Assembly: GCF_902652985.1 (NCBI RefSeq)
Contig: NC_047024.1
Location: 4,588,001 to 4,652,000 of the forward strand
Direction of reading: 5' to 3'
Length of the DNA stretch: 64,000 nucleotides
Origin: Pecten maximus
Lineage: Eukaryota
A program made the translations under genes and the position numbers. Shown in pieces: positions 40,401-60,131 of the stretch (position 1 is its first letter; the number at the start of each line of letters is the position of its first letter). Below the pieces are notes generated by a model, which ran no database searches, was not told the DNA's origin, and saw only the letters and a list, made by a program, of their open reading frames with translations.

Positions 40401-43400
40401 ACTAGACCCTACCAAGTACTCTCTACGGAAACTCCATAGTTACAGAATAATCACCAGTAATTACTACCCTACAGATGCTCTCACTCTCTAAGTTCCTCAA
40501 GGTTACTGAATGCTCTCTGCTATAACAGGACAATCTAAATATTTCCCAAGGTAACAGAATAATTACCATAGTAACAATTGATTTAGGATATAACACTTGA
40601 GGTTAAACAAATGTTCCTGACTAACAATAATCTCTGTGGTAACCAAATAATCACCATCGTAACTATAAATATTTAAAGTTGACTAAATACAAGGCGACAG
40701 CTACTAACTTGTAAGGTATTGTGCTCCAGTCTACATCAGGGGGAATGAAGTTTGCCAGCACTTTTCCTTTCAATTCTGGCATCTTAGGGACACGTACCAG
40801 TCCAAACCCTGTTGCTAGTCTACCAAAGTCTAAGTCCTTTACTCTGAAGATCATACTACATTCATGTTTTACATAGGACTGTACATACGACACATAGGCC
40901 TTGGCTGCCTTGTCCATTATGGCACGATCTTTGATAGACATTTTCTGTAGTTTTGGCAGGTGATTCTGAACATTGTCTGCTTTTTCTGTCATCTTTAAAG
41001 GTGCTTTCTGATTGATTTCAATGAATTTCACATAAGCATCTTCAGTTGGTAATAAAAATACAAGTGCAGTCCCTTTGTTGCCAATTCTCGCCGTGCGTCC
41101 ACATCTATGGATGAAGGAGTTTGCGGAGCTGGGCGGATCGTACTGGACAACCCAATCAACTTCTGGGATGTCTACTCCCCTTGCCATTACATCTGTACAC
41201 AGTAACACACCACTTTCCATTGTTCGGAATCTTGAGAATATCTTGTTCCTCTTTTTCTTCATTTTACCATGTATAGAAAGAATCTAGGAAATAAACATTT
41301 GTCATTATAAAACATTTGAAAAGATACATATGTATTTACAATGAATTTAATGAAATATCTAGATCTTGACACTTTCATTTTACAACAACTCAATTTTTAA
41401 ACATGTTTTTGATATGTCTAAGATAATTGTTATTGTTCACAGTTTTAAGATGAGAATTTCCAGGTGCCCCAATAGGCCTTAATAACTCTATTCATCCGCG
41501 GCTTACGGTATACTTCGTTCAAAGATCAAGTCATTTATCATGATCATAACAATAGGACTAGCCTATTCAGAAGAATTGTCCTTCATTCCAATAAGCCTAT
41601 ACTACCAGTTAGTATGATTTTCAGTTACTCACTTAACAAATCTGACATACCAATATATCTTGACCTTGCATATGGGTCATATAAGTCACTCATTCATTAT
41701 CATTTGCAAAATTTGTTTGACAGTATGGCTGAAATCAGCTGCACACACTCACCTGGGACTTTTTCAGGATATGTTGTATGGCTTGAGAAAAATAGTCAAC
41801 ACCAGCACACGTACTGAAAAACACCAGTATTTTGATCTCCTTGTTAATGTGCAAGAAATGAATGAGTTGGTTAAATTTCTCATCACTGTCCATGATCATG
41901 TATTGGTTTTCTAGAGATGCGGGTGTCCTCCTTACTGCACTTGTGTCAGAGCTGTCCCTTTTTTCCTTTACATTAATCCGAACTGGATTTCTCATCCCAG
42001 CTCGGATGAGTTTTTCTACCTCATCTGTCTGGGTAGCAGAAAATAATCCTGTGCGGCGTTGTTTTGGTAGAAAACTCAGGATTGTATTAATGCTAGCTTC
42101 AAAACCCATTTCTAAAAGACGGTCGGCTTCATCCAACACAAGAATTTCTAGAGATTTCACACTTGCTGCAAGGTTACATCCATCCCACTTTTTCTCTAAT
42201 AATGACTCAAAGCGCCCAGGAGTAGCAACCACAATATGACCTGAAACACATAAAATCTGGAATAACACCACATGTACCCTTTATATTTTTAATCTATCAC
42301 ACAAATACATATAACTTATCATAAGCACATGGGTCAAGGTCATTACTTTTTGCAAACCTTGTTTGGCTTCATCCAATAGAATTACTGGTTCAATATTAAG
42401 ACCTCTTGGTTGTCAAGAGGAAGTTGTTTGAAAGAAAGAGAAGATTTATATACCCGACACACATTCTGACAGGTGAGCTAATAATCAATCAACTTACTTA
42501 TGTGTAGTATGACTTACATTTACACTAGCTTATTTTTGAACCACTTAAATTTCTATTTCAAATTGATGATTCTGCAAAATTGATGATTCTGCAAAATTGA
42601 TGGGGACTTGTATTAAAACTAAACACACATACAAATAATAACTTACCATCTTTATTTGAAGATAAAGTAAATACTTCATTCTTGTTGATAAATAACTTTT
42701 GTTCAGAACAGAAAGCTAGTAAAAGACATTGTAAATCAATTATTAGGTCAAAGAAAACGATGTCTGATATGATCTGGGAAATCACCTGTTTCTATAAATA
42801 GAACACAAGAGTTCCATTTGAACATAAATGGTGGAACACACGTTCTCTGGTCTAAAGATCAGCTGGCATGGTTTACAAGTTTACAGGAGTATTCAAGTGA
42901 TGTTTAAGCTTAATATATGATAATGAATAGATATCTTCATCTGGAATATTTTTATGACTGAATATTTTACCGTTTCCACAACCTTGGGTATTCTGCTATA
43001 AGGTACAGTCTGTTTCATATAACTTCAGAATAACTAATCTTAATAAGGGCGCCCCCACTGTCAATTACCCGCGCCCTGCGCCCTTATTAGGTCAAATACG
43101 GTATTTGTTGACGAGGGCTTTTTCGCAGATAATATGCTGTTTTAACAAGCATACTGGTTTTTGCTTAAGCAATACATGTCCCTTATGTTACTGGCCCAGC
43201 TTAAAATAATAAAAGTGATGCAATCGAGTAAATGGACCTTGACCCAAAATCCCTAAAACTTGAACTTGTCGGAGATATTACGGTCATCATCATTGTGTGA
43301 AGTTTGATAAAAATCCCTCATCGAGATGAGAATGAAAGTGTTGCATAATCATGTTGATACAATTCAAGACAACTGGAGAGGAAATTAAATCCTTATAGCG

Positions 43401-45101
43401 ACCCCCCCCCCCCCCCCCCCCCTCCCCTCCCCAGTGTGACCAGTAGGAGACAATTACCATTTAGTTACATCATACAGACATAGTAACGACTTGGTATGTT
43501 GAAATTACTATTATCTATCATAAAAATCATCACAATAATGACTTGCCTGGTATCTTTACAATAATGATACATCTTTATAATGATATATTATGTCAAAAAC
43601 ATTGTTGTCAAATCTGTTATAGAAACTTATCTAAGAACTAAAGTCTATTTGTAAAAGTAACTTAAAAATGTAGTTTTTCACAATAATGACTTATCTATGA
43701 CCTACACATGTAGAGTGTACGGTCACTTACTATAAAGAGGCTGCTGGTCTTTCGATTTGTCATTTGACATTATCATGCATATGCGATGGTCATAAGTTTC
43801 TAGCTTACTAGCTAAGTTAGTGTTCCTTTTAGCCTTGTTGAAAGATACACAACGGCATAGAGAAAAAGAGGCCGTTTGTTTGAGCCCCACCATTGACAAT
43901 TTGACGGGGTATTTTTTATTACTCCTTCCTATTACACTTGTTTGTTTTATTAGCTCAATAGAGTATTGTTTTGAAATGTATCAACGTCAAGTAACAACTT
44001 ACCCATGCTAATAAAATAATGGCTTAGCCATTAGCTATTGCAAATGTTCAGGGATTGACACTAACAGTAGCCCGGCAGCCCTGGGCTGCCTGGAATTTGG
44101 TCGGGCTCCTAGAATGTCCAGACCAGCAGCCCTGTAGGCTGCCAACATTTCCAATCAAATTTATAATGTCCAGCTAAAGTTTTCTTCATTTACTTCAAAA
44201 ATATTATTTTCAAAACTTTTTTCATGATTGAACCGATGCGTAAGATCTAATATTTTTATACTCAGAATGAACTAGAATGCAGGAAACTGCATCTAGAATA
44301 TTCATTTTTTCCGCTGTGTGGGGTAAGGGCTGGAGGCCTAGGGACATTATGCCCCCTAGGCCTATAAATCCCCCAAGAGGGACATCACCTTTGGCAGCCT
44401 CATTCCAAAACCTGACAGCCCGGCGGTCTGTTAAGGCACAGGGGCATGTCTAATTTTATATAAAAAAATAGCCAGAAATACCTATATATATATTGACATA
44501 TATAGGTATTTCTGCCTATTTTTTTTAATATAAAACTAGACATGTCCCTGTGGTCAAGGTGATTAAATGAATTAAAGTCAATATCATAACAATTTCATGT
44601 AACTCCTTTAGGCTTAGCTTCTGTTATATTACTCCCATTTCAATTGTATTTTTCTGATTTAATTAGGTTAAGAAATTATAATATACATTTTGTAATCTCA
44701 CCTCCATTTAATTTGAACTTATTTATATCATCCTGTGGTTTTTCGCCTCCAATAAACAATATAGAAGCGACGCCATCATGATTTTCAAGAAAATGGTCAA
44801 TGACCTCTTTGATTTGGAATGCTAATTCTCTTGTAGGAGTTAGAATGATAGAAAATATCTCGTGTTTCTTCAGTTTCCCTGTTTCTCTCACTTGCTTGTC
44901 AAGCTTTTCAAGTATAGGAATAAGGAAAGCTAAAGTTTTGCCACTTCCAGTCACTGCCTCAGCTGCCACGTCCTTGTTGCCAATAAATAATGGTATGCAT
45001 GCCACTTGAACAGGAGTTGCTTTCACAAATTTCAACTTATCTAGTGTTTTAAAAGTAGAATCACAAAGTGTGACTGGCAACTCTTCCCACGTGGGTTCCA
45101 T
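37410..45101 (-). CDS. DDX55: ATP-dependent DEAD-box RNA helicase DDX55 (Spb4 orthologue), about 585 aa; exons 45101-44702, 42240-41753, 41283-40709, 40102-39868, 37469-37410
   Basis: Q motif ATPVQ, AVTGSGKTLAF, PTRELA, ATPGR, DEAD, QRRTGLFSAT, TDVMARGVDIP, QYDPP, HRCGRTARIG, DUF4217-like C-terminal extension (YVKHECSMIFRVKDLDFGRLATGFGL..PKMPEL) and Lys-rich tail; phases consistent. Confidence 0.95.
37702..38584. mobile_element. MITE-like element with 21-bp perfect terminal or subterminal inverted repeats in DDX55 intron 4
   Basis: TTTTTTGTTATGCGTGGATAC (37702-37722) is the reverse complement of 38564-38584; further inverted GCTATAAAA/TTTTATAGC lies inside; no ORF. Confidence 0.65.
39164..39324. 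mobile_element. Small hAT-like MITE remnant
   Basis: Termini CAGGGATTATTTT / AAAATGATCCCTG (12 of 13 inverted match); target-site duplication not clean. Confidence 0.4.
43145..43456 (+). mobile_element. Degraded HINE-like element related to the 19963 copy
   Basis: 5' AACAAGCATACTGG...TTGCTTAAGCAATACATGTCCC resembles 19963-20004; the 3' end TATAG...CCAGTAGGAGACAA resembles 20551-20583. Confidence 0.5.
44049..44400 (+). mobile_element. Partial copy of the CAGGG-terminated non-autonomous DNA transposon also found at 51196-52560 (opposite orientation, lacking the nested insert)
   Basis: CAGGGATTGACACTAACAGTAGCCCGGCAGCC...AATGTCCAGACCAGCAGCCCTG...TATAATGTCCAGCTAAA matches the reverse complement of 52560-52456 joined to 51402-51345. 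Confidence 0.75.
44437..44552. mobile_element. 116-bp near-perfect palindrome (foldback MITE-like)
   Basis: Arms CACAGGGGCATGTCTAATTTTATAT...AGAAATACCTATATAT / ATATATAGGTATTTCT...ATATAAAACTAGACATGTCCCTGTG; flanks GTTAAGG / GTCAAGG may be a 7-bp target duplication. Confidence 0.7.
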
Positions 45102-45339
45102 GTTTGTTATTGCTAACGGATCGGTAAATATTACGGATTGTAATATTGTTATGGAAATAATATTGATAAAGTAAGTATTCATTAATATTTATGAATCAAT
45201 TTATACGGAAGACATAAAAATAACCTGTACATGAATTATTGTCACCAAATCATTAATATTTAGCATTTCAATATATTTTTTTATTGATTTTTGTTATCAA
45301 ATATATTCTGTAAGATTATTTCAATTTTGAGACTACATT

Positions 45340-46825: not shown

Positions 46826-49800
46826 ATGGTTGCCCGTAAAAAGTCCAAACGGAAGTCATCATGGTTTACTTCTGGAAGTCAACAGTCTAAAAAGACAATG
46901 GAGGAGGAGAAAGAAAGTATAGCAAAAACGACAGAAGATGACGCTTGTTGTATCATCGATGACAGTGATGTCAAATTGGAGGGGGATGGTGAGTCCAAAG
47001 GACATCTGTGCTTGCACCATCTGCTTTCTATGTCATTTCCTGTCAGTGTTCAGTACCCAGACATTCATCGGAATTAGAGATTGAAGTTCTTTGTTTTTTT
47101 GCTAAGAAATATCTATATGCTGTCACTTTTGATTTCAGAGCTTAATTTCTATATTCTTGAATGGTAGTTTTAAAAAAAGGAATCTCTGAAATTACAGTTC
47201 AAGAGTGACAGGCTTTCGGGCATTTAGAAGACTATTGAGATATCATGTATGAAATCTCCCTGGGTCCTGAGACTAATTATGAAGACTGATCTGGCTGTAC
47301 CTCCTGCTGCTAGTCAAGATCCGTATGTGCGAATATTCTGTGCTTTTATTAATCTATATTGCTAGTTGCTGCCTGGTATTCTGTGAACTATGTTATTCTG
47401 TCTGCACTAAATCCTATATGTTGTAATTTGTATATAGGTATATGTTATTTATATACAGTAATACATTTTAGCTTCTATCCTATGTATATAAATTAAACAG
47501 TTTTTATGTTAAAAAAATTACACAAACAATAATGGTGCTTATAGTAATTATAGGTTCTGTATTGTTTGTAAAGTTGTGAAAACGAGATCATGGTGTTGCA
47601 TTTCAGAGGCATCAACTGTGGCCAGTTTATTGTAATAGATGTACATTATTAAGGTATATACCTAGTCAGTATTGATCCCAAATTATTGTCACCCGCGTGT
47701 TTGTCCAGTGTTTTTGGAATCGGTGACAATAAAGGCAACAATTAGTTCTACTTCCTTTATTTTATCCTTCGTTTACATCATCATTGTGCAAGCTTTATTC
47801 TTTCTGTTCTCTTCTCTGTCTCTACACCTTCTTCTCTCTCTCTCTCTCTCAATCTGACTCTCTTTTTTCAGTCTCGTCTATCCATCTAATATATACGGTA
47901 CATACAGTCTAAAGACAAAGTGTATGAAAGTATATATGAAAATTCCATAGATAATTTGTCTACAGAAAATTGAAATCCCATAGTCCAAGTCAATTTACCA
48001 TAGACCCATTTTGTAAACATATTGCCGAAAGTAGCATAACTGCGCCACACAAACACTTGCATCATCCAGTTCATACTCACTCAAATGTTTGAAGCAAATA
48101 ACATGCTGTTCTTGGTAAAAACACCTCGATTGTTAGCTCTGATTTCATATGATCATTTGTCAGAAAAATTTGGGAATGTTGTTTACATGAAATGTAATGT
48201 ATGTCAGGACTCAAACATTTCATAGCCAATCGGGACAACACTTAGAAATTTTACGTAGACCTACCAGGTTATCTATAGCCTCTGGACTATCGGACCACAT
48301 TTACTTTTGAACAATGAAGACACTACTTCTGCATTACTAAATCCTCTTTTTTTAATTGGTTAACTCTACCCTTAGGAGGCAGAACTAACCTATCTCGGCT
48401 GAAATCCTTTGATGACCTTCACATAGACATTACCACACTCTTCATTCTCTTTCACTTCCTACCACCGTGCGTGCGTGGCCTGGTCATCTCATTAAAAGCT
48501 CAATCTCTTTTAAAATATTTTTTTAAGTTGCCTTCTTCTTACTTTTCTGATCTGACACACTGTCCCTTTCCCACCTGTCATACTATCAAAATCTGTACAA
48601 ATCTATGTTGAATTGTTTATTATACAAGAATGTCTGAATGTACAAAAAATGAATAATACAGACAGATTTTATGTTGAAGACATCTCTATAGCTTTTATGA
48701 AGCATTAAAAAGAAAAAAAAAACTATTTATGCTATTAACAAACATTAGGACCCTGTTTAATGTGAAAAGGACCCCATTTATATTATACACTGAGCGCTAA
48801 CCCTGACATGCTAGATATTGTGTATCACCTGTAAAATGTACCACTTTTGTATGTCTGTCTTACAAGTATATATGATGAAGCACTGCATATTTATTACAGT
48901 ACCTATATATATCATTATATGTATCATGATAATTGACTTTTGTTTTTAACCAGATGATTTGGTCCCATTTGCACTTTGCATGATTTTTACATTACAATGA
49001 TTTTGCTTTCAGCATGCTAGAACTTAGGTATTTATTTCCGAGGATAAGAACCCCCTATCTGACTTTGATACAGGCAATCCCTATATTGACCTTGAACAAC
49101 AAAAACAAAAGACTTCATGCATAAAAAACAATATGGTACACAACTTTTGCTTATAATCTGTTGTATCTATGGATTAAAAGCTTTCAGCCAGACAATATAC
49201 ATATTAATGTAGAAGACTACAGTGTAAAATATTGTGACAAGTTGAGACTTTGTGAGCATCAACATGATGTCGGGTCCGACATTAACACACAGTGGTACGG
49301 CCGGTGGAGGTGAAGCCATGGCAAAAACATTCTGTGCAGTGCAAGGATGTGCAAATTCCTGTGGATTGATGAGGAAGAAACGAGAAGGATTTTGTGATGT
49401 GCACAAAGGCCAGCCACGTGACATTTGTCCATGTCCTATCCCAGAACCACTCTTCCCCTTTCCTATAGATGAAAACCAGCGTAGGATCTGGATGCAGAAA
49501 GTACACTTAGCTGAGGAGTTGTTAACCTCCAGACTCCGGGTAAGTGACAAGAAAATCAAAACTGCTTTATCACTAAAGTGGAAAAAAAGTGTTAACACTT
49601 TCTAAAATAGTGTGCAATTTTGTCACTGAGAGAAAATATATAAAAATACATTTTTCTTCATAGAAGTGTCCACTTATCATGCTGTAACAAGTATTGTTCT
49701 CTGAATTTTGTCGTGGATATGTTACTTCCCAATTTAATTAATTCATTAATCCCACTACAAGCTGATACGTGTTGGAGCAATAGATTAAGTTTTGTCTCTA

Positions 49801-52800
49801 AATGTTTTCCATGAATTTTTCGAAACCTTGTGTTGAAAATGTTATCACAATGCACTATTCTTTTTATTTGATTGTTAAAATGTAATGTGAGTGTTACAAT
49901 AAGGCATCTTCTGTCAATCTCAGTGTTTGACTAATTCGTTTAAAACATGGTATGCTTTATAATATCAAAATGTTGCTATATTTTCCTGAAAACTAATTTG
50001 ACATTTCTTTGTAAAGTAAGAAGTGGTCTTTGTTTATTTTTGTTCAGTTTTCTTTCAATGCAACATCCAAAGCAATAAAATTCCTTTATCAAACTCTATA
50101 ATGTGATGCTTTCATTGATGTATTCAGATTTTTCCAGACAGTCATTTATATATGAGTTTTTTACTGAATCATCTGGTTAGGTTTGCTCTGTGCATTTCCG
50201 GGATGGCAAGCCAACAGATGAGAACCCCCATCCTGAATTAAAGCTGGACGCCGATGAAAATTCACATTCAAAACTCGGTGCAAATGGTAAGCATCCAAAT
50301 TTGTGTCTGGATTTTAAGAAGCACACCAGAATCAGTTTCACATTATTATTTTTTATATAAAAAGTTCTCATTAAGCTATTAAGATATTATGCATTTGTAT
50401 GTTTGAGATGAAATATTATACAGTTGTATATTTGAGATGAAATATACTTTGAGGTGAAAAATTATACAGTTGTATATTTGAGATGAAATATTATACAGTT
50501 CTATAATTGAGGTGAAATACTATACAGTTGTATGTTTGAGATGAAATATTATACAGTTCTATGTACAATGGAAGCACTCTTGATTCATTATAACCTTTGC
50601 TTTTTTTTGTATTCAAGATCCCCAGTTCAATAAACTTCACCAGAAGAATCTTCAGCTGTTTTGTCGTTTATGTGGAGACAACGAAGGAGTATCTATGAAA
50701 GTCTGCAGAGCATATACAAAATATAGATTTCAAGTGGACATCTTTTCATCAATGGCTATTGATGTGAACCAGGATTCCTGTTTTGTCCATCCTCGAAACA
50801 TTTGTTATGTCTGTCGAGCAAAATTAAGTGCGTGGAAGGCCGCTGTACAAAAAGGCAAACCTGCTGATATACAAATACAGCCAGCCAAATTTTTACCCCA
50901 TGACGAGTCCAGTAAATGTCTCGTGTGTTTGAACTACTCATTCAGAACCGGCAGACCTCCACAAAAGGCTCCTGCTACCAATTCAAGCAACTCATGTTTA
51001 GGTATGGACATAATTCAGAGTTGCTTCCCTTATCTCATCAGAGTTATTGCCCTTGATGGTCATACCATTTAGAGATATGCTTCCTTTATCTCATCAGAGT
51101 TATCACCATGATTGCCATACCATTTAGATATATGGTTCCCTTATCTCATCAGAGTAATCGCCCTTGATTGCCATACCATTTAGATATATGGTTCACAGGG
51201 GTTGACACTAACTTAGTTGCCTTAGGTTATGAAATGAGGAAGCCTGGGCTGCCAATGGTGAGACCCCTCCAAGGGGATTTTGGGGAAGTTCCCTAAAATG
51301 CAGTTTCCTGCTGTCTAGTTCTTACACCTACAGGTTTTATATAAACAGTTTTGAAAATAAAATTATTGAAGTAAACGAGGACAATTTTAGCTGGACATTA
51401 TACAGTGCAACTTCCGAAAACCGAACCTTCTAAAAACCGAACACCTCTGAATACCGAACGAATTGTTATTGTACGGAATCGGTCATTCTTTATTATGGTA
51501 TGTAAAAACTTCCAAATACCGATCCCTCTGAATTCCGAACACCGGACCGATTTTGTCTCCGGTTCCTGATAAAGTATACCAAAAATTACTTCTGAAAACC
51601 GGCCTTACCTGAGCAATTATGACACGAGGTCAGGCTAGTCAACCGTGAAACAACAACTGTGACGGGTATTGTGTGAAGCCAAATTGTGTCTCGATCGGGA
51701 CTTACGTTTACATGTAGGTGATTTGTACAGGTAATCCAATAAATACCCTGAGGGGCGTTATGATTGTAGTGTATAATCAACACGGTAATTAATACTAATT
51801 ATGAAACAATGCCACACTTCATCGAAGCGCAGCAGATTCCATGTAAATCTTCGCAATACAAGTAGAGCTAGGAGCCTGAGTTTCGCATTCTAATCTAAAT
51901 GAGGCCCAATAAGGGGTGTTCTTGCAGGGTCATAACTATACACACTGAAATGATGCCAGTGTCCGATGTTTATTTTTTAAGACAATACCGATATCGGGAA
52001 TACCACCGGTATCAAGTGATCAATTGTAATTCATATTGAAGCAAGACATCTTCACACACTTTCATATCATTCGATTTCCGTTTTTTGTAAAATCATTAAA
52101 TATCCCGTATTAGGCCCCACCACATGGCGAAGCAACAGAATGCAGGTCGATCGTGAAGTGCAGTAAATGTATAAAACTATATAAAACTACAGTTAGTCAT
52201 TTTAATTTCTTATATAATCTGTAATATATGCATTGATTTACTTTCATGATATTCATATTCTTCAGACAAACCAAATTATCTATGTGCGTATAGTAGGCCT
52301 AGTGTCGGTTTGTAATCGGGTACAATCTAACATCGTCCGACCAATTATATTCGGAACTCGACCGGTTATTTTGACCAACTTCTCCAAACCGAACCCTCTG
52401 TAAACCGAACAAATATCAATGTCCCATGCATGTTCGGTTTATAGAGGTTCCACTGTACATTTGGCTGAAAATGTTGGTAGCCCACAGGGCTGCTGGTCTG
52501 GACATTCTGGCAGCCCGACCAGATTCCAGGCTGCCGGGCTACTGTTAGTGTCGATCCCTGGGTTCCTTTATCTCATCAGAGTTATCACCCTTGATGGCCA
52601 TACCATTTAGATATATGCTTCCTTTATCTCATCAGAGTTATTGCCCTTGATGGCCATACCATTTAGATATATGCTTCCTTTATCTCATCAGAGTTATTGC
52701 CCTTGATGGCCATACCATTTAGATATATGCTTCCCTTATCCCATCAGAGTTATCACCATGATTGTCATACCATTTAGATATATGCTTCCTTTATCCCATC

Positions 52801-55800
52801 AGAGTTATCACCCTTGATGGTCATACCATTTAGATATATGCTTCCATTATCTCATCAGAGTTATCACCCTTGACGGCCATACCATTTAGATATATGCTTC
52901 CTTTATCCCATCAGAGCTATCGCCCTTGATGGCCAAAACATTTAGATATATGCTTCCTTTATCCCATCAGAGCTATCGCCCTTGATGGCGAAAACATTTA
53001 GATAATATCGTAATACTAAACATTAGATCCTACGTATACCAAAATGGATAATTTTGGGGATTTATGAAAATGATATGATGGATGGTTCCCAGACTGTCAA
53101 ACAGGAGTTTTATCCTCAAAATTGTCATTTTAAAAGTTTTTTTTAGATGTTCTGAATTTTTGTTTTATGTTGCCATTATCAATCAAGCATGCAACTGATT
53201 ATCTGTAGATATTTTTCTGGTTTTATGTAAGCATGCCTTTGTTGTTGTGTTTGTAGACTCCATATATTACACTTCCTTTATTATCGGCTTGTTACTAACC
53301 TTTCTCCACTTCATATATCAATATGTAGCAATGATTTAGTATAAACTAAATATTAATATATATATCATCTTTATAATAACACGTTTCATTGACAACATTT
53401 TCCATGAATGAGATAAAATTGAACATGCTCTGTAGTAATTCCAACATTTCAGCATCCGTACCAATATTGATTTGAGGGTTAAAGGTTGTACACATGTACC
53501 TAGATATTGAAACTATCCAAAAGGCTCATTTCAGTTACAAGAAAGTTATTTCACTTGCCAGTAAAAAGTCAATTTGCAACATTATAATCACAAAATAATG
53601 ATGCACCTTTCAAAGTAGGGTCAGACGTTTGCAATACAAGTTTATACAAGGCTGAAGCAACTATTGATAATTAGTTTTTGGGTCAGTTAGGTCTTTGATG
53701 TCATTAACATTTGACATAAATACAAGCTTCATGATTATGCAAATCAGAAATGCCCAAATTATCATCAGAAATTTACTGAAAGTATATCATGTTTTTGATA
53801 CGTTGCCAACTAATTCTTCTTTTTGATGATTATCAGTAATATGGTGATAATCACAGAAAGAGTAGTTCTAATTTCAGGCATGCTTTTTTTTCAGAACCTG
53901 AAGAGACCATTGAGGTTTGATCATATACAGAAAACATACCGTCTGTTGATTAAAATATAATTACGATTATATATAGTAAGACAGTTAAAAAAATTCAAAA
54001 TCATATACTAATGTGCCTGATTCTATTTCTCACTTCAGATAAACCGTCGACAACCATGGATGTTTGTAAGGAAAAAGATGATGAGAACAAATTGTATTTG
54101 TTGGACTTTAAGTTGGACATGGATGATATCATCTCATCCACCCTGAAGGAATTCTGTGAGCCAAATGATGAGGATACATTGGCCTTTCACTCGGATCTCT
54201 CAAAGTTTTCTCAACAACTTCGATCTATTGACCGTATGTTTTAATTCAAGATATATATTGATGTAATTGTCTGAATAATAATTAATTAAGGTGTCGATAC
54301 ATGAATGTTTTACTATTGTTTTTGACAGACTTGACTTTGTGTTTATGTAGGAAGCTACAAGATCTTGTGGTTTCTGAATTTTTATTTTGAGATTGCTATG
54401 ACAGGACATGTTTCATTTTGCTACTATGTTGAATTTTAAGATTAATTAAAGACAACATTGGGAAAAAATAATGTTAACTAGATTTCATCAAGATCAAAAC
54501 ACAGGATTTCCATCCAGAAAATGGTCGTAGATATGTTATCGTTCTGACGGTCGTTTTTCTACGTTTTCTCTTCGTTTTCTCTTTGCTTCTCTTCTCTAAC
54601 TGGTCATTTGACTTTGGAAACTTGACAGTGACCTTCAACTACGAAGTCAAGGTCAACGATTTGCTTGCCTGAAGTCTGCATTGGTTAGAGTATTGGAAGA
54701 AAAGCATTTAAAGTGCATTTTGATGATATTTTTTTGATTCTGAACGGTTTCGACAGTGCTGTTTTTGCGTTATTTTTTAGGACTCGTCCTTGAAATGTTG
54801 CAAACATCTTCAAAGGATTATTTTCTTCGCAATCATTGATTGCACTTGTATTATCAGTTTCTGAACTACCACTTATATTCTGATCATTCCTGGTAACTTT
54901 CCTTTGACACTGAAAGCTTGTTTTGCTCGGTTTAACCATGCTGTATGTTTTTTGGATTTGTTTTATGCAGGCAAGACGAAGGAGGTGCGTAAGATCTACA
55001 CAGAATGTTCTGAGAAGCTTCGTATCTATCGTGAGGAGCTGGAGGAGGCTGACCGCGAGGAGGAGTAAGTACAAACTCCAGAATGGATTTCAGGAATCAG
55101 CATTCAGAAGTTAATCATTGGTGAAATTTAGATAGTAGTAGCATTGTCTTTACATATTCTTTTGAAAAAATGTCATATTTTTTGTAAGTTAGTGACTGCC
55201 AGGAATGCTGTGAAGAATTAAAACATGTTTTGGTCAGTTTGAAATTCATGATGATTGCTTTGATTGCTGTTGCCTATGATCTGATCATTTCTGTTTTGTT
55301 ATTTCCTGAATATTGATTCCCTGTTTATTGAAATGATTTACAGCGAATGAAAACTAAAAACTTTTATGATGTAGTTATCTCACATAGCCTGAAAATAGGT
55401 GTGATGTAAAAACATGAATTTGTGCCTGATATCTATCAACCCCTACCATTAAAAACACTACAGCAACAGATAAAAACAGATGGATTAAAAATCTCAATGG
55501 AGCTCGTCCTATTTCAGTCATTCCCCACCTTCTCATTAAGTTACCAGTAAGACAGTACAACAAGTATTTTTTAATAGGTTAAAAGAAGCAGCTGCTGAGA
55601 TTGATGCAAAGGAGGCTGCGGAAGCAAACGCCAAGGTTGATGATGAGAGTGACGAGGATGATGTACAGTTTGTGGCTGCAACCTATGACCCATCTGTTAT
55701 GGAGAAGAGACAAGTTTTAGCTCACCAAAACAAAAACATTGTATCAGCGTTATCAGCACCAGCAGTAGGGAAAATGGAACCACTGGCACTGCCGCCAGGG

Positions 55801-58800
55801 TAAGTGAAACAAGACTTTATCACCAATTAGTAAACATACGTCACATTATCACCAATTAGTAAACATGCGTCACATTATCACCAATTAGTAAACATACGTC
55901 ACATTATCACCAATTAGTAAACATGTCTCAAAAAACAATAAATAGACAGTCAAATATGACGTTTGGCCAGAGGAAAAATTGTAATGAACCCTGTATTTCT
56001 GTACTGTAGTGATGTGTTGGTGAAGTTGTTGTTGTAATGAACCCTGTATTTCTGTACGGTAACGCTGTATTGGTGAGGTTGTTATGGTAATGAACCCTGT
56101 ATTTCTGTATTGTTGAGGTTGTTATTGTAATGAACCCTGTATTTCTGTATTGGTGAGGTTGTTATGGTAATGAACCCTGTATTTCTGTATTGGTGAGGTT
56201 GTTATGGTAATGAACCCTGTATTTCTGTATTGTTGAGGTTGTTATTGTAATGAACCCTGTATTTCTGTACTGTAGTGCTGTATTGGTGAGGTTGTTATGG
56301 TAATGAACCCTGTATTTCTGTATTGGTGAGGTTGTTATGGTAATGAACCCTGTATTTCTGTACTGTAGTGATGTATTGGTGAGGTTGTTATGATAATGAA
56401 ACCTGTATTTCTGTACTGTAGTGCTGTATTGGTGGGTTGTTAGGGTAATGAACCCTGTATTTCTGTACTGTAGTGATGTGTTGGTGAGGTTGTTATGGTA
56501 ATGAACCCTGTATTTCTGTACGGTAACACTGTATTGGTGAGGTTGTTATGGTAATGAACCCTGTATTTCTGTACTGTAGTGATGTGTTGATGAGGTTGTC
56601 ATGGTAATGAACCCTTTATTTCTATATTGTAGCGCTGTATTGGTGAGATTGCCCCCTAACAGTCAGCAGGTCCAGCGCAATTCTAGTCCCTCCCTACAGT
56701 CACTGAGGAATGTCCTACAAGCCACCATCAACAAGCAAATACCTGCTGTGGCACAGTTACAGCCGACAACCACTACTGTGGTAAGGGATATTTATTACCC
56801 GATACCAGTAATATATCTATGATTTTTACATCTGGATTCCAAAATCTGTACATTGTGATTATAATTGTACTACATAAACAGTAATATCCCCAATGTTGAT
56901 TTTACAAAAGATTCTCAGAAGGTTTGAAATTGTATCCAATATATCTAGCAAGCAATTATTAATTTGGAATCTTGACAAGTGTTACTTTCATTTTTGTGAT
57001 GATACACAGCACAATAATTATTGATGTTTATACTGTTTGTAGGGGGCCCCAGCAAGCCAGGTGGTAAAGTCGAACAGTCTTCAAAATCAACAACGTATGG
57101 AAGCCCTGTATAGAGCAGATGTAGAGTAAGTGTGAAGGAACAGCATTGTCCATCAATATTTATTGATGTCGAATATATTAATAAAAAATGCTGATGATTT
57201 AATCAGTTTCTATCTTTCTGAAAGTCTCCCCTGAAGGCAGAATCAGCAAGTTGATTCTGTCAGTGGGGAATCTTTCAGTGGGGAATCTTTCGGTGGGGAA
57301 TCTTTCAGTGGGGAATCTTTCAGCAAAGTAGGGAGAAGTGAAGGATTTGCTGTTAAAAATCAAATATCATATGTTACGGGCTATTCCTATAAATGACATG
57401 GTAAATCTGTCTAACAATTAAGCTTTGTATTTCACAGGATCATAGACATTAGTAGTAAAGTACTCGGGAAGAAATTTAATGATATCTGGTACAAAGGAAC
57501 AGTATCTGACATCCAGAATAAAGACAAAACCATTTCAGAGGTACAGTATCTAACCAATAAAGCAAATGAAAAAGTTTAAAACTTATCATACTGACAAAGC
57601 AGGACAAATGAGATATATGTTTATCATATAACTGGTGATGTGTTCTACCATGTCAACTGACTGTCATAGATATCATAAAACCTATGTAATAACACTATTG
57701 TGACATGATAAAAATAATAATTTTTGGTGTCTCAATTAATTTATGACGTTGTTTGTCTTTGTAGAGAAAAACATTCCGTCTGAGTCGAAATTCATCTCTC
57801 TTATATATAAAAAAAAAGTGTTTTCCTTGATAATTATATTTTCATAAATATAAGATATGTAATAAACAGAATCGTACGATCACGGCTATGTAATACAGAA
57901 GTCATGTTGCTTGTGAAATAATTTCACACGCCACACGCTCATGGCATATCAAATTATTAACTTATTTGATAAATTCCATATTATATTGACTCTCGCGTAA
58001 CATCCTCTGTATAATTACTTGTTCATTTTCAGAGAAAATATAGCATAAAGTTTGATGGAAAGGGAAAGAAAGTGCTGAGCCCAAAACATGTTGCCTTCAA
58101 AGACTCCTTAGTACGACAGATTTATGTGGGCACTCGAGTCATAGGTAAGTAGTACGACAGATGTATGTTGGCACTCGAGTTATAGGTAGGTAGTACGACA
58201 GATGTATGTTGGCACTCGAGTCATAGGTAGGTAGTACGACAGATGTATGTTGGCACTCGAGTTATAGGTAAGTAGTACGACAGATGTATGTTGGCACTCA
58301 AATTAGAGGTAAGTAGTCCAACAGAGTTATGTTGGCACTCAAGTTATAGGTAAGTAGTACGACAGATGTATGTTGGCACTCGAGTTATAGGTAAGTAGTA
58401 TGACAGATGTATGTTGGCACTCAAATTAGAGGTAAGTAGTCCAACAGATGTATGTTGGCACTCGAGTTATAGGTAAGTAGTACGACAGATGTATGTTGGC
58501 ACTCGAGTTATAGGTAAGTAGTACGACAGATGTATGTTGGCACTCGAGTTATAGGTAAGTAGTACGACAGATGTATGTTGGCACTCAAGTTAGAGGTAAG
58601 TAGTACGACAGATGTATGTTGGCACTCGAGTTATAGGTAAGTAGTACGACAGATGTATGTTGGCACTCGAGTTATAGGTAAGTAGTACGACAGATGTATG
58701 TTGGCACTCGAGTTATAGGTAAGTAGTACGACAGATGTATGTTGGCACTCGAGTTATAGGTAAGTAGCACGCCAGATTTATGTGGGCACTTGAGTCATAG

Positions 58801-60131
58801 GTAAGTAGCATATAGCAAGTTTTAGATAACAAGGTAAAATACTGACATTGAGATTGATCAGGGTCAAAGTTCAGACTTGGTTTAGGACGATCAGAATAAC
58901 CGGGTGTAATGATACGTTCTGCTGGTAGATGGTTAGAAGATTTGTCCTAACCACTGTTATTGGTGTTAAATTATTGTTTCTACCTTGTGATTAACTTGAC
59001 ACTCTTATTAAATGCCAATCTTCCATTCAGATAGATAATTCAACATTTATTTGAATTTTGGGGCTAATTTTTCAATATTGTTTGATATTTAGTTGGATCT
59101 TCATGATAGTGTAATGTTCACCACACAACAAAATAAACCTGAATTATATATCCTTTCAGCATTGTATCGAGATGAGGATTCTACGTCATCGTATTATGCT
59201 GGTATAGTAGCGGAGACTCCCAACGGCAGGAATCAACAGAGGTTTGTTTCTCATTATTTTATACAGTTTTCACAGTTATTTAATCTTGGTATTCACTATC
59301 ATTAGGGTAGCAAATCTCATCATTCAAAGTTACTGTTACAGAAATAAATCTGATTTAAAATAGATCTTGAATTCCACTTTGATACTCTACATTACAGATA
59401 AACATGCATATATATTTGCCAACTTTTTTTTAATTTCCAGGGAGGAAGGGTCAACAAATATTGTAAATAAAATGTTTTTCATTTGAGAATAAAATTTGGT
59501 CCAGTATTTCACATGAGTGTAACTTGTTATTCTGATCTCCTTTTTAGATATTTGATTTTCTTTGATGATGGCTATGCCCAATACTCCCTGGCAGTGGATA
59601 TCAACAAAGTTTTCTGGCAGAGTAAGTTATATCAGGAGATTCAGAAACCTTTTTATATAATTCTAATGTTGATGAAATAAATATTTCTCAGAGAAACATT
59701 CAGAAATTGCCAAAAAAGTCTGTATTACATATGCATAATTACACAATATCATGTTTATAAGTTACATTTTAGAAATTTCATCAATTCTCAATATTCATAA
59801 TGATCTTCGATGGACAATTTTAGGTTTTAGAATTTTCATGTTGTTCAGGCATTTGTTAATTTTACTGAAGTGAATTTGTAATACAAGTCTTTGGAAAATA
59901 TCTCCTCTGTGCAGCGAAACTTGTAAGATAATTGATAAAACCTGTTTAATATCAAAGTAGGAATGAATTTTAGGTAAGAAATGATCTTTAATGTGTTCTA
60001 CCATTTACAAAGATATTGACAGCAAATCAGTAGAGACAATTACTGGTGTTTTCTAGGTGCTAATGTGTGGGAGGATATCCATCCCGACTCGCAGGAATTC
60101 ATCAAGGAATACCTCAAGCAATATCCCTGAG
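46826..60131 (+). CDS. SETDB1: Histone H3K9 methyltransferase SETDB1, 5' part through the Tudor domains (continues beyond window); exons 46826-46988 (tentative first), 54039-54233, 54971-55064, 55578-55799, 56633-56780, 57043-57125, 57438-57540, 58033-58144, 59160-59241, 59548-59621, 60057-60131
   Basis: Triple-Tudor sequence VLGKKFNDIWYKGTV, KYSIKFDGKGKKVLSPKHVA, YVGTRVIALY, YAGIVAETPN...RYLIFFDDGYAQY, WEDIHPDSQEFIKEYLKQYP matches the SETDB1/eggless family; phases are consistent except one extra C at 60125-60127. Confidence 0.9.
49318..50286 (+). CDS. THAP (C2CH) zinc-finger domain on two exons, 49318-49539 and 50181-50286; probable alternative first coding exons of SETDB1
   Basis: MAKTFCAVQGCAN...LFPFPIDENQRRIWMQKV...RLR|VCSVHFRDGKPTDENPHPELKL contains the THAP C-x4-C, P, W, C-x2-H-F and P residues; GCCATGG start context; donors CGG|GTAAGT and ATG|GTAAGC. 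Confidence 0.85.
50400..50562. repeat. About 29-bp minisatellite (TTTGAGATGAAATATTATACAGTTGTATA), about 5 copies
   Basis: Direct periodicity. Confidence 0.8.
50618..51001 (+). CDS. RAG1 N-terminal non-core-like zinc-binding domain on one symmetric (phase 1-1) 384-nt exon
   Basis: HQKNLQLFCRLCG...IFSSMAIDVNQDSCFVHPRNICYVC...FLPHDESSKCLVC...GRP parallels vertebrate RAG1 HQANLRHLCRICG...[25 protein letters not shown]...WHPHTPSCDIC (recalled sequence); pyrimidine-rich acceptor and TAG|GTATGG donor; no stops. Confidence 0.8.
51196..52560 (-). mobile_element. Non-autonomous DNA transposon with 17-bp TIRs (CAGGGRTYGACACTAAC; hAT-like termini) carrying a nested element
   Basis: CAGGGGTTGACACTAAC ... 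GTTAGTGTCGATCCCTG; flanks GGTTCA / GGTTCC; second copy at 44049. Confidence 0.8.
51403..52455. mobile_element. Tc1/mariner (pogo/Tigger-like) non-autonomous element with TA target-site duplication
   Basis: TA|CAGTGCAACTTCCGAAAACCGAAC ... GTTCGGTTTATAGAGGTTCCACTG|TA; repeated ACCGAAC subterminal motifs; the empty site is visible in the 44049 copy. Confidence 0.85.
55817..55925. repeat. 29-bp tandem repeat (TTATCACCAATTAGTAAACATACGTCACA), about 4 copies
   Basis: Direct periodicity just inside the intron. Confidence 0.85.
55981..56650 (+). repeat. 53/37-bp minisatellite derived from the SETDB1 acceptor at 56632/56633
   Basis: Unit GTAATGAACCCTGTATTTCTGTACTGTAG|TGCTGTATTGGTGAGGTTG matches the real TTTCTATATTGTAG|CGCTGTATTGGTGAGATTG. 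Confidence 0.92.
57260..57323. repeat. 15-bp tandem repeat (TCAGTGGGGAATCTT) x4
   Basis: Direct periodicity. Confidence 0.85.
58145..58800 (+). repeat. 41-bp minisatellite derived from the SETDB1 donor at 58144/58145; 16 GT...AG units
   Basis: Unit GTAAGTAGTACGACAGATGTATGTTGGCACTCGAGTTATAG; 656 nt = 16 x 41; final GTAAGT at 58801. Confidence 0.95.

Follow-up and report, generated by a model that had tools for sequence, protein, structure and literature searches.

The structure of the N-terminal zinc domain (NZD) of RAG1 was first reported in 2026, and the role of the domain is still termed undefined (10.64898/2026.01.24.700457; PMC4411706). Its occurrence has been described as limited to the RAG1 family and, outside it, to Chapaev alone (10.64898/2026.01.24.700457; PMC4411706), and residues 87-217 of RAG1 have been assigned to nuclear localisation, zinc coordination and nucleic-acid interaction (PMC3124419). 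The zinc ligands of the mouse domain are H102; C110 and C113; C175 and C178; and H206, C210 and C213. The NZDs of the invertebrate RAG1L proteins and of the Chapa type have the helix order H1/H3/H4 plus a C-terminal helix, and the likeness of the NZD to the ZAD is confined to the ZFa module (10.64898/2026.01.24.700457).

Other described systems resemble the present locus in the way in which a host enzyme is joined or directed to DNA. SETMAR and other host-transposase fusions have transposon-type DNA-binding modules and a host SET enzyme in one transcription unit, spliced together. In vertebrates, the KRAB-ZFP/TRIM28/SETDB1 pathway stands for sequence-directed H3K9 methylation, typically of transposons; there the protein that reads the DNA is distinct from the enzyme and connected to it via TRIM28. 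In the P-element transposase and THAP9, a THAP domain is the N-terminal DNA-binding head.

We analysed a window of Pecten maximus DNA (the whole stretch of 64,000 nucleotides), in which an exon for a RAG1-type NZD occurs towards the 5' end of the SETDB1 gene (Table 1). The locus shares with SETMAR the combination described above, but here the captured parts would be N-terminal, would be expressed from an internal promoter and comprise two different zinc modules, a THAP and an NZD, without a transposase catalytic domain, and the enzyme that they would join is invertebrate SETDB1 (H3K9). The outcome that we propose is that of the KRAB-ZFP/TRIM28 pathway, whereas the putative DNA reader would lie within the enzyme itself. 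As in the P-element transposase, THAP comes first, and relatives of the NZD head a P-type clade; however, a P-type RNase H or GTP-binding domain was found neither in the gene nor near it, and the nearest THAP relatives in the genome are Harbinger-like, not P-type. Unlike the RAG1 domain, the exon is not followed by RING/ZDD or a recombinase core, and is placed between THAP and a histone methyltransferase.

Table 1. Features of the 5' part of the SETDB1 gene (window positions; junctions written as last/first exon base)
Feature	Position	Strand	Evidence
Predicted alternative first coding exon	46826..46988	+	ATG at 46826; donor GGGATG/GTGAGT, phase 1
5' untranslated part of THAP-first transcript	48956..49317	+	RNA contigs
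THAP exon 1 (ATG and first part of THAP zinc domain)	49318..49539	+	Pfam; junction 49539/50181; in-genome THAP match
THAP exon 2 (C-x2-H end of domain), ends phase 1	50181..50286	+	junctions 49539/50181, 50286/50618
NZD exon (RAG1-type N-terminal zinc-finger domain, complete, and basic GRPPQK tail)	50618..51001	+	phase 1-1; junctions 50286/50618, 51001/54039; contigs X1, X2, X3, X6
Next coding exon, acidic N-terminal region of SETDB1, phase 1-1	54039..54233	+	junction 51001/54039; open frame
Following exon	54971..55064	+	start RNA-supported; end predicted, donor GGA/GTAAGT, frame kept
Predicted exon, acidic/Ala-rich N-terminal region	55548..55799	+	AG/GT sites, phase 2-2, open frame
First SETDB1 Tudor, two predicted exons	57438-57540, 58033-58144	+	Pfam DUF5604 E 3e-3, 4e-5; frames chain
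Second SETDB1 Tudor (YLIFFDDGYAQY), two predicted exons	59160-59241, 59548-59621	+	Tudor_5 E 1.3e-6, 2.7e-6

Sequence and predicted fold of the zinc domain

The NZD exon is 384 nt long, with an AG acceptor (...ttttttgtattcaag/AT at 50616-17) and a GT donor (TTTAG/gtatgg at 51002-03), and its reading frame is stop-free from 50620 for 127 codons. Size and phases were as given in the initial annotation, and every motif that had been listed there was found in the translation exactly as listed: H7-x7-C15-x2-C18-G at the N-terminus, D52-x4-H57-P58-x3-C62-x2-C65 in the middle, P93-H94-x5-C100-x2-C103 towards the C-terminus, and the basic tail G111-R-P-P-Q-K116. The pI of the product is 9.4. All eight zinc ligands of the mouse NZD are matched in the same order, C15, C18, C62 and C65 forming the ZFa set and H7, H94, C100 and C103 the ZFb set. 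The distance of seven residues from H7 to C15 is as in mouse, but the spacing H94-x5-C100 differs from the mouse H206-x3-C210. The ligands are of Type I, as in the Chapa domain of Chapaev and N-RAG-TP (one N-terminal His, then a C-terminal His and two Cys).

PF12560 was the top Pfam family for the exon (E 2e-4; 21.5 bits, just below the curated cutoff of 23.3 bits), and zf-AD (PF07776, the ZAD of insect C2H2 proteins) also gave a weak match (E 2.6e-3). From a phmmer search against 1.84 billion proteins we obtained 95 cluster representatives at E<=1e-3 (best 1.3e-14), none of them more than 47% identical to the exon, a similarity that goes well past what chance would give; PF12560 was present in 81 of these matches, and the nearest Atlas clusters are also PF12560 carriers. 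In the same search the exon directly matched a RAG1L protein having a 264-bit RAG1 core and RING (P0045; E 1.9e-5). A word-index protein search, which covers proteins of 70-222 aa and hence leaves long SETDB1 isoforms outside its range, gave no candidate. We then built a profile from the exon and 39 relatives (40-row alignment). C15 and C62 are invariant in this alignment, C18 and C65 occur in at least 90% of its rows, and H7 and H94 in at least 90% of the relatives. The profile matched the mouse RAG1 NZD (21wb_A) with E 1.4e-19 and 73.8 bits, and residues 100-233 of full RAG1 with E 8e-14, as against E 4.8e-3 and 20.2 bits for ZAD.

The initial annotation had allowed that profile searches might favour an unrelated finger such as ZAD/zf-AD over RAG1; these scores favour the RAG1 NZD. 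We therefore find it scarcely credible that the product is a ZAD or other unrelated zinc finger whose likeness to RAG1 is only a shared CxxC pattern, although zf-AD does match the exon and ZADs were its top matches among the available structures. The ZFb set H7/H94/C100/C103 is what tells an NZD from a ZAD, which argues against that reading, and the direct match to RAG1L weighs against it too. Judged by its sequence, the product of 50618-51001 belongs genuinely to the family of RAG1 N-terminal zinc domains (NZD/Chapa, PF12560).

The AF2 model of the product (pLDDT 86.9) has helices at 2-11, 34-45, 63-77 and 101-107, which is the order described for the NZDs of RAG1L and Chapa proteins. The predicted order H1/H3/H4 is shared with the mouse NZD, the predicted lack of helix H2 with invertebrate RAG1L, and the predicted extra C-terminal helix with the Chapa domain. 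The exon product is thus modelled as a folded two-zinc NZD of the invertebrate type, without helix H2. Foldseek and VIA-align searches of PDB structure libraries matched ZADs alone, weakly to middlingly (Z 4.5-5.8). ZAD ranked first by structure because the libraries searched returned no RAG1 NZD entry; moreover, the ZAD structures align only to residues 13-81 of the model, i.e. to the ZFa module with its C4 site. A ZAD binds one zinc and dimerises, whereas the exon product has in addition the ZFb site, a basic surface and a far higher RAG1 NZD score.

The THAP-first transcript and its predicted continuity with SETDB1

The two exons upstream of the NZD exon together carry a THAP zinc signature: C6-x4-C11, FPFPIDENQRRIW, then VCSVHF...NPHPEL. 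Exon 1 shows the pattern C-x4-C ... FPFP..D...R.W plus a Cys/His-rich insert, and its Pfam THAP match, from a scan of this exon by itself, was sub-threshold (E 0.019). Exon 2 has the pattern VCSVHF..GKPT..NP.P.L. Both are colinear with the Pfam-positive THAP of two Harbinger-like transposases of the same genome (L014 and L018); the match of exon 2 to in-genome THAP transposases (55-59% identity over 22 aa) lies about 50 nt past that of exon 1. By motif and paralogue match, we conclude that these exons encode a THAP domain (PF05485).

Transcription was assessed with sequence runs X1, X2, X3 and X6, which were taken as RNA from their records and whose contigs were placed on 48400-54399. Coverage is confined to exons and the introns are without depth, which argues that the runs are indeed RNA. 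Contigs of all four runs cover the NZD exon, and those of X1, X2 and X6, which stem from three studies, contain GT..AG junctions: 49539/50181 (X1 and X2), 50286/50618, and 51001/54039 (X1, X2 and X6). The exon is hence transcribed and spliced, where the initial annotation had considered that it might never be transcribed. The spliced chain in the contigs runs from THAP exon 1 through THAP exon 2, the NZD exon and exon 54039-54233 to the exon at 54971. The X1 contig, 1784 nt in length, extends 873 nt beyond 54234, and that of X2 extends 771 nt; the loose end of the former is identical to the genome from 54972 (30 nt of the downstream part compared).

The 5' part is covered by unbroken contigs at 48956-49282 (X1), 49012-49538 (X2) and 49101-49303 (X3). 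An in-frame stop just before 49252 means that an upstream coding exon cannot continue into the THAP frame. We infer that an internal promoter upstream of about 48.95-49.0 kb, inside the SETDB1 gene, drives the THAP-first transcript. The predicted first exon and THAP exon 2 both end in phase 1 and the next exon is phase 1-1, so that inclusion or skipping of the NZD exon would preserve the frame after either of them, as had been claimed. The description as a cassette exon stood in this respect, but inclusion was the only form seen in X1, X2 and X6. All contigs crossing the 5' edge of the NZD exon enter it from THAP exon 2, and all crossing the 5' edge of 54039 enter from the NZD exon; contigs over 48400-54399, in which rare forms are dropped, gave neither the skipping junction 50286/54039 nor a junction from farther upstream. 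No contig linked the predicted first exon, which lies outside that region, to 50618 or 54039.

Downstream, Pfam searches of successive + strand exons, made with single exons rather than a joined THAP, NZD and SETDB1 protein, identified DUF5604, Tudor_5, Tudor_4, MBD and Pre-SET, in this order, from 57.4 kb to about 34 kb past the window end, Tudor_4 and the domains after it all being located past that end. DUF5604 is a SETDB1-specific family, and Tudor_5 bears the Pfam title 'Histone methyltransferase Tudor domain 1'; the exons at 59160-59621 chain in frame. Putative split SET and post-SET exons, read by eye without a Pfam match, follow Pre-SET and end in ...CGSAECRGRLL and a stop. An ORF at 56.6-56.8 kb was rejected as an exon: its possible lengths of 148 or 73 nt break the frame, and 55799 joins 57438 in phase. 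The gene is about 50 kb long, and its introns are full of repeats. Only one copy of the Pre-SET exon occurs in the genome, and this together with the SETDB1-specific families places the NZD exon in the only SETDB1 gene.

In RNA, junctions connect the NZD exon with the two exons that follow it; predicted exons then keep the frame, which has canonical sites and no stops for at least seven exons after the NZD exon and through the predicted Tudors. One mRNA would thus run from the NZD exon to the Tudor and SET exons. The earlier claim of a RAG1-type module within a chromatin enzyme therefore holds for the position of the exon and its splicing to downstream SETDB1 exons, and continuity to SET is a prediction from the frame. 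Alternatively, the transcript might encode a short non-catalytic protein consisting of THAP, the NZD and the acidic N-terminus, possibly with the Tudors, which would end before SET and act as a DNA-bound decoy or partner recruiter. Among the contigs over 48400-54399, with 30 nt compared downstream, none was seen to span from the NZD exon to a Tudor or SET exon, a gene of this length and repeat content leaves room for early polyadenylation, and a mammalian short SetDB1 isoform has Tudor domains only (PMC13108219). We nevertheless judge this form to be quite improbable: the frame stays open through canonical sites as described, and the overhangs of the X1 and X2 contigs are longer than the predicted exons as far as the second Tudor taken together (717 nt).

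Origin of the THAP and NZD modules

In a tblastn search with P-type, RAG1L and Chapaev-like proteins as queries, the NZD exon itself was the only match within 104 kb (the window plus 40 kb downstream); neither RING, RAG1 core nor transposase remnants were detected there, in agreement with the initial annotation, and no terminal repeats were found near the exon. The exon is at a single locus in the genome, which excludes a retrocopy. The search for a source transposon in the same genome, which had been suggested as a check, yielded distant relatives only (29-37% identity for THAP, 27-29% for the NZD), and no element bearing both modules was found. The genome does contain a multi-copy element with an NZD-type domain (L002-L004; 38.7 bits to PF12560). 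Although the exon shares the domain family with Chapa, it differs from the in-genome copies to the extent given, has no transposase ORF after it and is not joined with them in the tree.

The relatives of the NZD comprise heads of P-element-type transposases, plus many stand-alone or tandem-domain proteins, and at least 12 P-type transposases have an NZD at the N-terminal position normally held by THAP. In a tree of 102 NZD segments (quick IQ-TREE search), the exon lies on a long branch (1.2) in an open polytomy, outside the P-type clade, itself supported at SH-aLRT 96, and apart from in-genome element copies. It did not group with RAG1L, Chapaev-like or P-type rows of this tree, from which no donor can be named. 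The initial proposal of an exaptation of a RAG1-related module is thus borne out as to PF12560 membership, but the label is too narrow, given the P-type and stand-alone carriers, and the tree shows no donor of RAG1 lineage.

THAP of this type occurs in Harbinger-like elements of the Pecten maximus genome, and the NZD in RAG1L, Chapaev-like and P-type transposases. Both kinds of module are otherwise at home in DNA transposases, and the THAP-NZD head is therefore most likely old captured transposase DNA-binding gear. The same transposon character, the intronic repeats around the NZD exon and an orthologue search that found none among cluster representatives and 70-222-aa proteins would also fit an exonised fragment without function of its own, either a passenger of neutral effect within a 5' isoform or a trigger of mRNA decay. 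We give this very little credence. The eight zinc ligands and near-invariant family residues are retained, the reading frame has no stops and fits the phase of both neighbouring exons, neither transposase remnants nor terminal repeats were found close by, and the NZD junction is the one assembled in all three RNA sets. A closest relative at no more than 47% identity and the branch of 1.2 indicate that the exon is no recent insertion. Furthermore, each of the three SNPs that fall in coding exons is synonymous, among them the sole SNP seen in the NZD exon; this goes against a passenger and weakly suggests purifying selection on the coding exons.

A possible DNA-targeting head on an H3K9 methyltransferase

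The position of the NZD after a transposon-type THAP in the mRNA suggests that a silencing enzyme may own a DNA-targeting head. We consider it probable that the NZD exon belongs to a THAP-first SETDB1 mRNA and is part of a captured transposase head steering the H3K9 methyltransferase to DNA. Such an mRNA would start from the internal promoter near 49.0 kb and encode THAP (two exons), the NZD and the acidic N-terminal exons, followed presumably by the triple Tudor, MBD, pre-SET and split SET. THAP would supply sequence-specific DNA binding, and the basic NZD, with its GRP-x-x-K tail, would add nucleic-acid contact and/or nuclear import. Together they would carry the methyltransferase straight to defined DNA sites, plausibly transposon ends, with no need of an adaptor such as KRAB-ZFP/TRIM28. 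More tentatively, it is possible, if less likely than not, that the main SETDB1 protein has this THAP and RAG1-type NZD head built in, reads DNA with it and places H3K9 methylation at cognate sites, e.g. transposon ends.

By analogy, the NZD may play a DNA-binding role; the authors of the NZD structure list among their limitations that DNA binding of invertebrate NZDs was never assayed (10.64898/2026.01.24.700457). It is possible, if somewhat unlikely, that the NZD is instead a protein-protein or nuclear-import module, such as a ZAD-like dimeriser or an importin-binding piece, with THAP alone or neither module doing the targeting. Its ZFa half is similar to the ZAD, which dimerises, Pfam names the family after importin binding, the domain ends in the basic tail, and a 'regulatory scaffold' is the role preferred by the structure's authors (10.64898/2026.01.24.700457). 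However, the NZD, unlike ZAD, does not mediate dimerisation and has an electropositive patch (10.64898/2026.01.24.700457), there are P-type transposases that begin with an NZD in place of the DNA-binding THAP, and the product of the exon has the basic pI given above.

We found no paper on a THAP-NZD-SETDB1 fusion. As an expressed part of an H3K9 methyltransferase gene, beside THAP, the NZD has a wider range than was known, and its SETDB1 and P-type contexts argue that it is a portable nucleic-acid or chromatin targeting module and not a RAG-specific regulator. The locus also offers a tractable test system for the NZD, with DNA binding and H3K9me3 as readout. If the targeting model is true, a simple chromatin mark would for the first time give a readout of what the RAG1 NZD does, and the enzyme would parallel the vertebrate KRAB-ZFP/TRIM28/SETDB1 pathway without an adaptor. 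This would be an invertebrate case of a silencing enzyme taking over transposon DNA-binding gear, and bears on how heterochromatin is aimed at transposons in animals without KRAB zinc-finger proteins.

Domain encoded by the NZD exon

The exon at 50618-51001 (the NZD exon, for the RAG1-type N-terminal zinc-finger domain) lies between an acceptor rich in pyrimidines (…ttttttgtattcaag/AT) and a good donor (TTTAG/gtatgg), and holds a single open frame of 127 codons from 50620. From its translation, we observed all the Cys/His clusters that the initial annotation had listed for this phase 1-1 exon, in order: H7-x7-C15-x2-C18-G, D52-x4-H57-P58-x3-C62-x2-C65 and P93-H94-x5-C100-x2-C103, followed by the tail G111-R-P-P-Q-K116. 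The encoded protein is basic, with a pI of 9.4 (K+R 18 versus D+E 8). Short tandem repeats lie on either side of the exon (50400-50580 and 51010-51200), the units being like gaaatattatacagttgtatatttgagat on one side and ~70 nt long, ending ...ccataccatttagatatatg, on the other.

Two identities were weighed for this domain, RAG1-N and an unrelated zinc finger such as ZAD. With the exon alone, the best Pfam family was PF12560 (RAG1_imp_bd; E 2e-4, 21.5 bits, slightly below the 23.3-bit cutoff) and the second was zf-AD (E 2.6e-3). In a protein-language look-up, its neighbours were clusters bearing PF12560 from molluscs and arthropods. HMMER, run over the full set of 1.84 billion cluster representatives, found 95 matches at E<=1e-3 (best 1.3e-14); PF12560 is present in 81 of them, and 25 of the 95 are also touched by zf-AD. 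In the same search, the N-terminal residues 6-119 of P0045, a RAG1-like protein having the RAG1 recombinase core (264 bits) and a RING finger, matched the exon with E 1.9e-5. A profile that combined the exon with 39 short relatives (A1) matched the solved mouse RAG1 NZD (21wb_A) at E 1.4e-19 and full-length mouse RAG1, residues 100-233, at E 8e-14, whereas the best ZAD structure reached only 4.8e-3. The profile searches, therefore, do not favour ZAD over RAG1-N and speak against an unrelated zinc finger.

In the mouse NZD, zinc is held by C110, C113, C175 and C178 (ZFa) and by H102, H206, C210 and C213 (ZFb) (10.64898/2026.01.24.700457, a 2026 structure preprint). Each of the eight ligands has a counterpart in the NZD exon; six (H7, C15, C18, C62, C65 and H94) are invariant or at least 90% kept across the A1 rows. 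A confident AlphaFold2 model of the product built with A1 (pLDDT 86.9, pTM 0.73) has predicted helices at 2-11, 34-45, 63-77 and 101-107, the same order as in invertebrate RAG1L and Chapa domains, H1/H3/H4 without H2 plus a C-terminal helix (10.64898/2026.01.24.700457). The best structural matches of the model were ZADs, over residues 13-81 (the ZFa half) only, with Z 4.5-5.8, from libraries that returned no RAG1 NZD entry; such likeness to ZAD in the ZFa half only is likewise reported for the NZD (10.64898/2026.01.24.700457). On these profiles and this model, the domain is assigned as a RAG1-type N-terminal zinc-finger domain, and the exon is predicted to encode a folded two-zinc NZD.

Transcription, splicing and the host gene

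Reads over 48400-54399 came from four runs of four studies of one species, analyzed as short-read contigs; the run records only guess RNA. Coverage was confined to exons, with zero in the introns at 49.6-50.0, 51.0-51.2 and 52.8-54.0 kb apart from expressed repeats at 51.2-52.6 kb, and therefore the runs behave as RNA. Contigs of runs X1, X2 and X6 contain the GT..AG joints 49539/50181, 50286/50618 and 51001/54039. An X1 contig (1784 nt) continues for 873 nt past 54234 with letters matching the acceptor at 54971, and the chain from THAP exon 1 through THAP exon 2 and the NZD exon to the 54039 exon was verified as far as 54971. As the NZD exon has one locus only in the 918-Mb genome, the joined form is no retrocopy. 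The exon is expressed, joined to THAP exons upstream and to SETDB1 N-terminal exons downstream, and the initial annotation's caveat that it might never be transcribed is set aside by these spliced contigs.

Contigs differ from the assembly at 49198, 49212 and 49273, upstream of the ATG at 49318, and within coding exons at 50238, 50898 and 54193, all synonymous (L, P and S). The latter three are a small hint of constraint, which argues against the NZD exon being a neutral exonised fragment. Intronic repeats at 51200-52600, just 3′ of the exon, were covered by contigs to very great depth in each of the four runs (~2500 at maximum in X6), and mismatches and odd joints were numerous there; the signal probably comes from a strongly expressed element present in many copies elsewhere in the genome, not from expression of this intron.

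The phases agree with the earlier claim that the exon can be included or skipped in frame after either first exon, the other being the predicted exon 46826-46988. All contigs crossing the 5′ edge of the NZD exon come from THAP exon 2, and all those crossing the 5′ edge of the 54039 exon come from the NZD exon. The assembled path in the X1, X2 and X6 data sets is thus the NZD-containing one, given that contigs hide rare forms and that the 46.8-kb exon lies outside 48400-54399. A DEAD-box helicase gene (39805-45182, minus strand; motifs TGSGKTLAF, LDEADRLL, ARGVDIP and HRCGRTAR in ORF translations) stands head to head with this locus, ~1.6 kb from the exon at 46826, so that a shared bidirectional promoter is possible.

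The two THAP exons together have the C2CH pattern and THAP signature residues, with a Cys/His-rich insert; exon 1 alone gives Pfam THAP at E 0.019. Both are colinear, ~50 nt apart, with the Pfam-positive THAP of multi-copy ORFs in the same genome, which continue as HTH_Tnp_4 and DDE_Tnp_4 and are PIF/Harbinger-type transposases; in two of these (L014 and L018) the THAP bears the same insert. RNA contigs cover the stretch from ~48.96 kb into the THAP exon without a break, and the frame is closed by a stop before 49252; the THAP isoform therefore has a start codon of its own, regardless of what precedes it.

Downstream, the frame stays open from 54039 through canonical splice sites, with no stops, to 59621. 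Pfam places the Tudor families DUF5604 and Tudor_5, both specific to SETDB1, in the last four of these exons; past the window end, on the same strand, come Tudor_4, MBD and Pre-SET. These are followed by exons resembling a SET domain that a long intron full of repeats interrupts, and then by a post-SET end. The genome has the pre-SET exon in one copy only, and by its domain content we take this gene to be the only SETDB1 of the genome. Predicted exons 54971-59621 total 717 nt versus contig extensions of 873 nt (X1) and 771 nt (X2), and therefore these contigs reach the Tudor exons if fully spliced. The protein from the NZD exon is predicted to continue to the catalytic SET domain, the alternative being a short non-catalytic isoform. 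Large tandem arrays occupy SETDB1 introns at 60170-64500 and ~16.5-32.4 kb past the window end (L010, L009 and L011), among them a ~22-kb stretch dividing the SET domain; in one of them, open frames such as VVQTFLLPTSGGRWFKHSYYLHQ recur periodically, and others read HIIYTGQDTSFTQDKTHHLHRTR and CDSVTSRNRI.

Features of the THAP-NZD-SETDB1 locus (window positions) and of related elements (L, other stretches of the same genome; P, protein matches of the NZD exon)
Feature	Position	Strand	Description
THAP exon 1	49318-49539	+	reads MAKTFCAVQGC…FPFPIDENQRRIW…
THAP exon 2	50181-50286	+	reads VCSVHFRDGKPTDENPHPELKL
NZD exon	50618-51001	+	384 nt, AG/GT sites, phase 1 at start and end
Exons continuing the NZD frame	54039-54233, 54971-55064, 55548-55799, 57438-57540, 58033-58144, 59160-59241, 59548-59621	+	canonical sites
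L014	361-1797	-	PIF/Harbinger-type transposase, N-terminal THAP
L018	100-1785	-	PIF/Harbinger-type transposase, N-terminal THAP
L002	1126-1857	-	PF12560-headed ORF; L002-L004 near-identical (38.7 bits to PF12560), three chromosomes
L003	1429-1857	-	PF12560-headed ORF
L004	1420-2010	+	PF12560-headed ORF
L004, second ORF	2088-2510	+	motif FVFDNEQMIGKTW, shared with P0015
NZD-headed P-type transposases			P0020, P0071, P0057, P0005, P0009, P0003, P0021, P0024, P0031, P0044, P0052, P0085

Relatives and origin of the domain

The domain had been described as stand-alone, and indeed tblastn over 104 kb with P-type transposases, RAG1L, Chapaev-like and tandem-NZD proteins matched the NZD exon only, and remnants of a RING, a RAG1 core or RNase H were absent. 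Among the 95 relatives, 12 are P-element-type transposases by similarity to the core of P0020, with the NZD at the very N-terminus followed by TNP-like RNase H, a GTP-binding insertion domain and P-element HTH; THAP was undetected in these 12, most of which form one clade (SH-aLRT 96). Three relatives are RAG1-like. Others are NZD-RING proteins, many short ORFs, proteins with a "FDNEQ.GKTW" ORF like that of the multi-copy element L002-L004, which is probably a young Chapaev-like family, and long proteins of low complexity that hold two or three NZDs in tandem but lack a transposase domain (P0001, P0002, P0004, P0008, P0012 and P0014), which look like host genes that took up the domain independently. 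None of the 95 carries THAP, SET, Tudor or MBD.

In a maximum-likelihood tree of 102 domain segments, built by a quick search, the NZD exon has a long branch (1.2) that attaches at an open polytomy; it falls neither in the supported P-type clade nor close to the in-genome copies. The proposed search for a source transposon in the same genome gave distant relatives only (L002-L004 among them), at 27-29% identity to the SETDB1 exon. From the long unplaced branch and this low identity, it follows that the capture is most likely old. Hence, of the suggested exaptation of a RAG1-related module, membership in the NZD/Chapa family stands, but a RAG-transposon origin is not supported, since the tree leaves the exon in the polytomy and P-type transposases also carry the domain.

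Proposed role and significance

THAP would supply sequence-specific DNA binding, and the NZD, which is basic and has a GRP-x-x-K tail, may contribute contacts to nucleic acid and/or import into the nucleus. SETDB1 would in this way be directed straight to defined DNA sites, plausibly transposon ends, for H3K9 methylation. By analogy, a nucleic-acid role is indirectly supported, as the NZD replaces the DNA-binding THAP at the N-terminal head of P-type transposases. Mouse RAG1 residues 87-217 serve to localise the protein to the nucleus, to bind zinc and to interact with nucleic acid (PMC3124419); the NZD has an electropositive patch, and dimerisation is a property of ZAD, not of NZD (10.64898/2026.01.24.700457). 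A role in protein-protein contact or import is the competing reading.

The NZD/Chapa family, THAP, SETDB1 and host-transposase fusions such as SETMAR are already known. In the literature searched, we found no description of a SETDB1 with a THAP-NZD head, and neither THAP nor transposase comes up in a review of SetDB1 from 2026. The Chapa domain is stated to be absent from transposable elements other than those of Chapaev/Transib type (PMC4411706), and the NZD is described as specific to the RAG1 family, Chapaev being its only other consistent carrier (10.64898/2026.01.24.700457). The NZD-headed P-type transposases and the SETDB1 exon go beyond this published range, and the fusion is of interest for RAG origins, transposon domestication and heterochromatin targeting.
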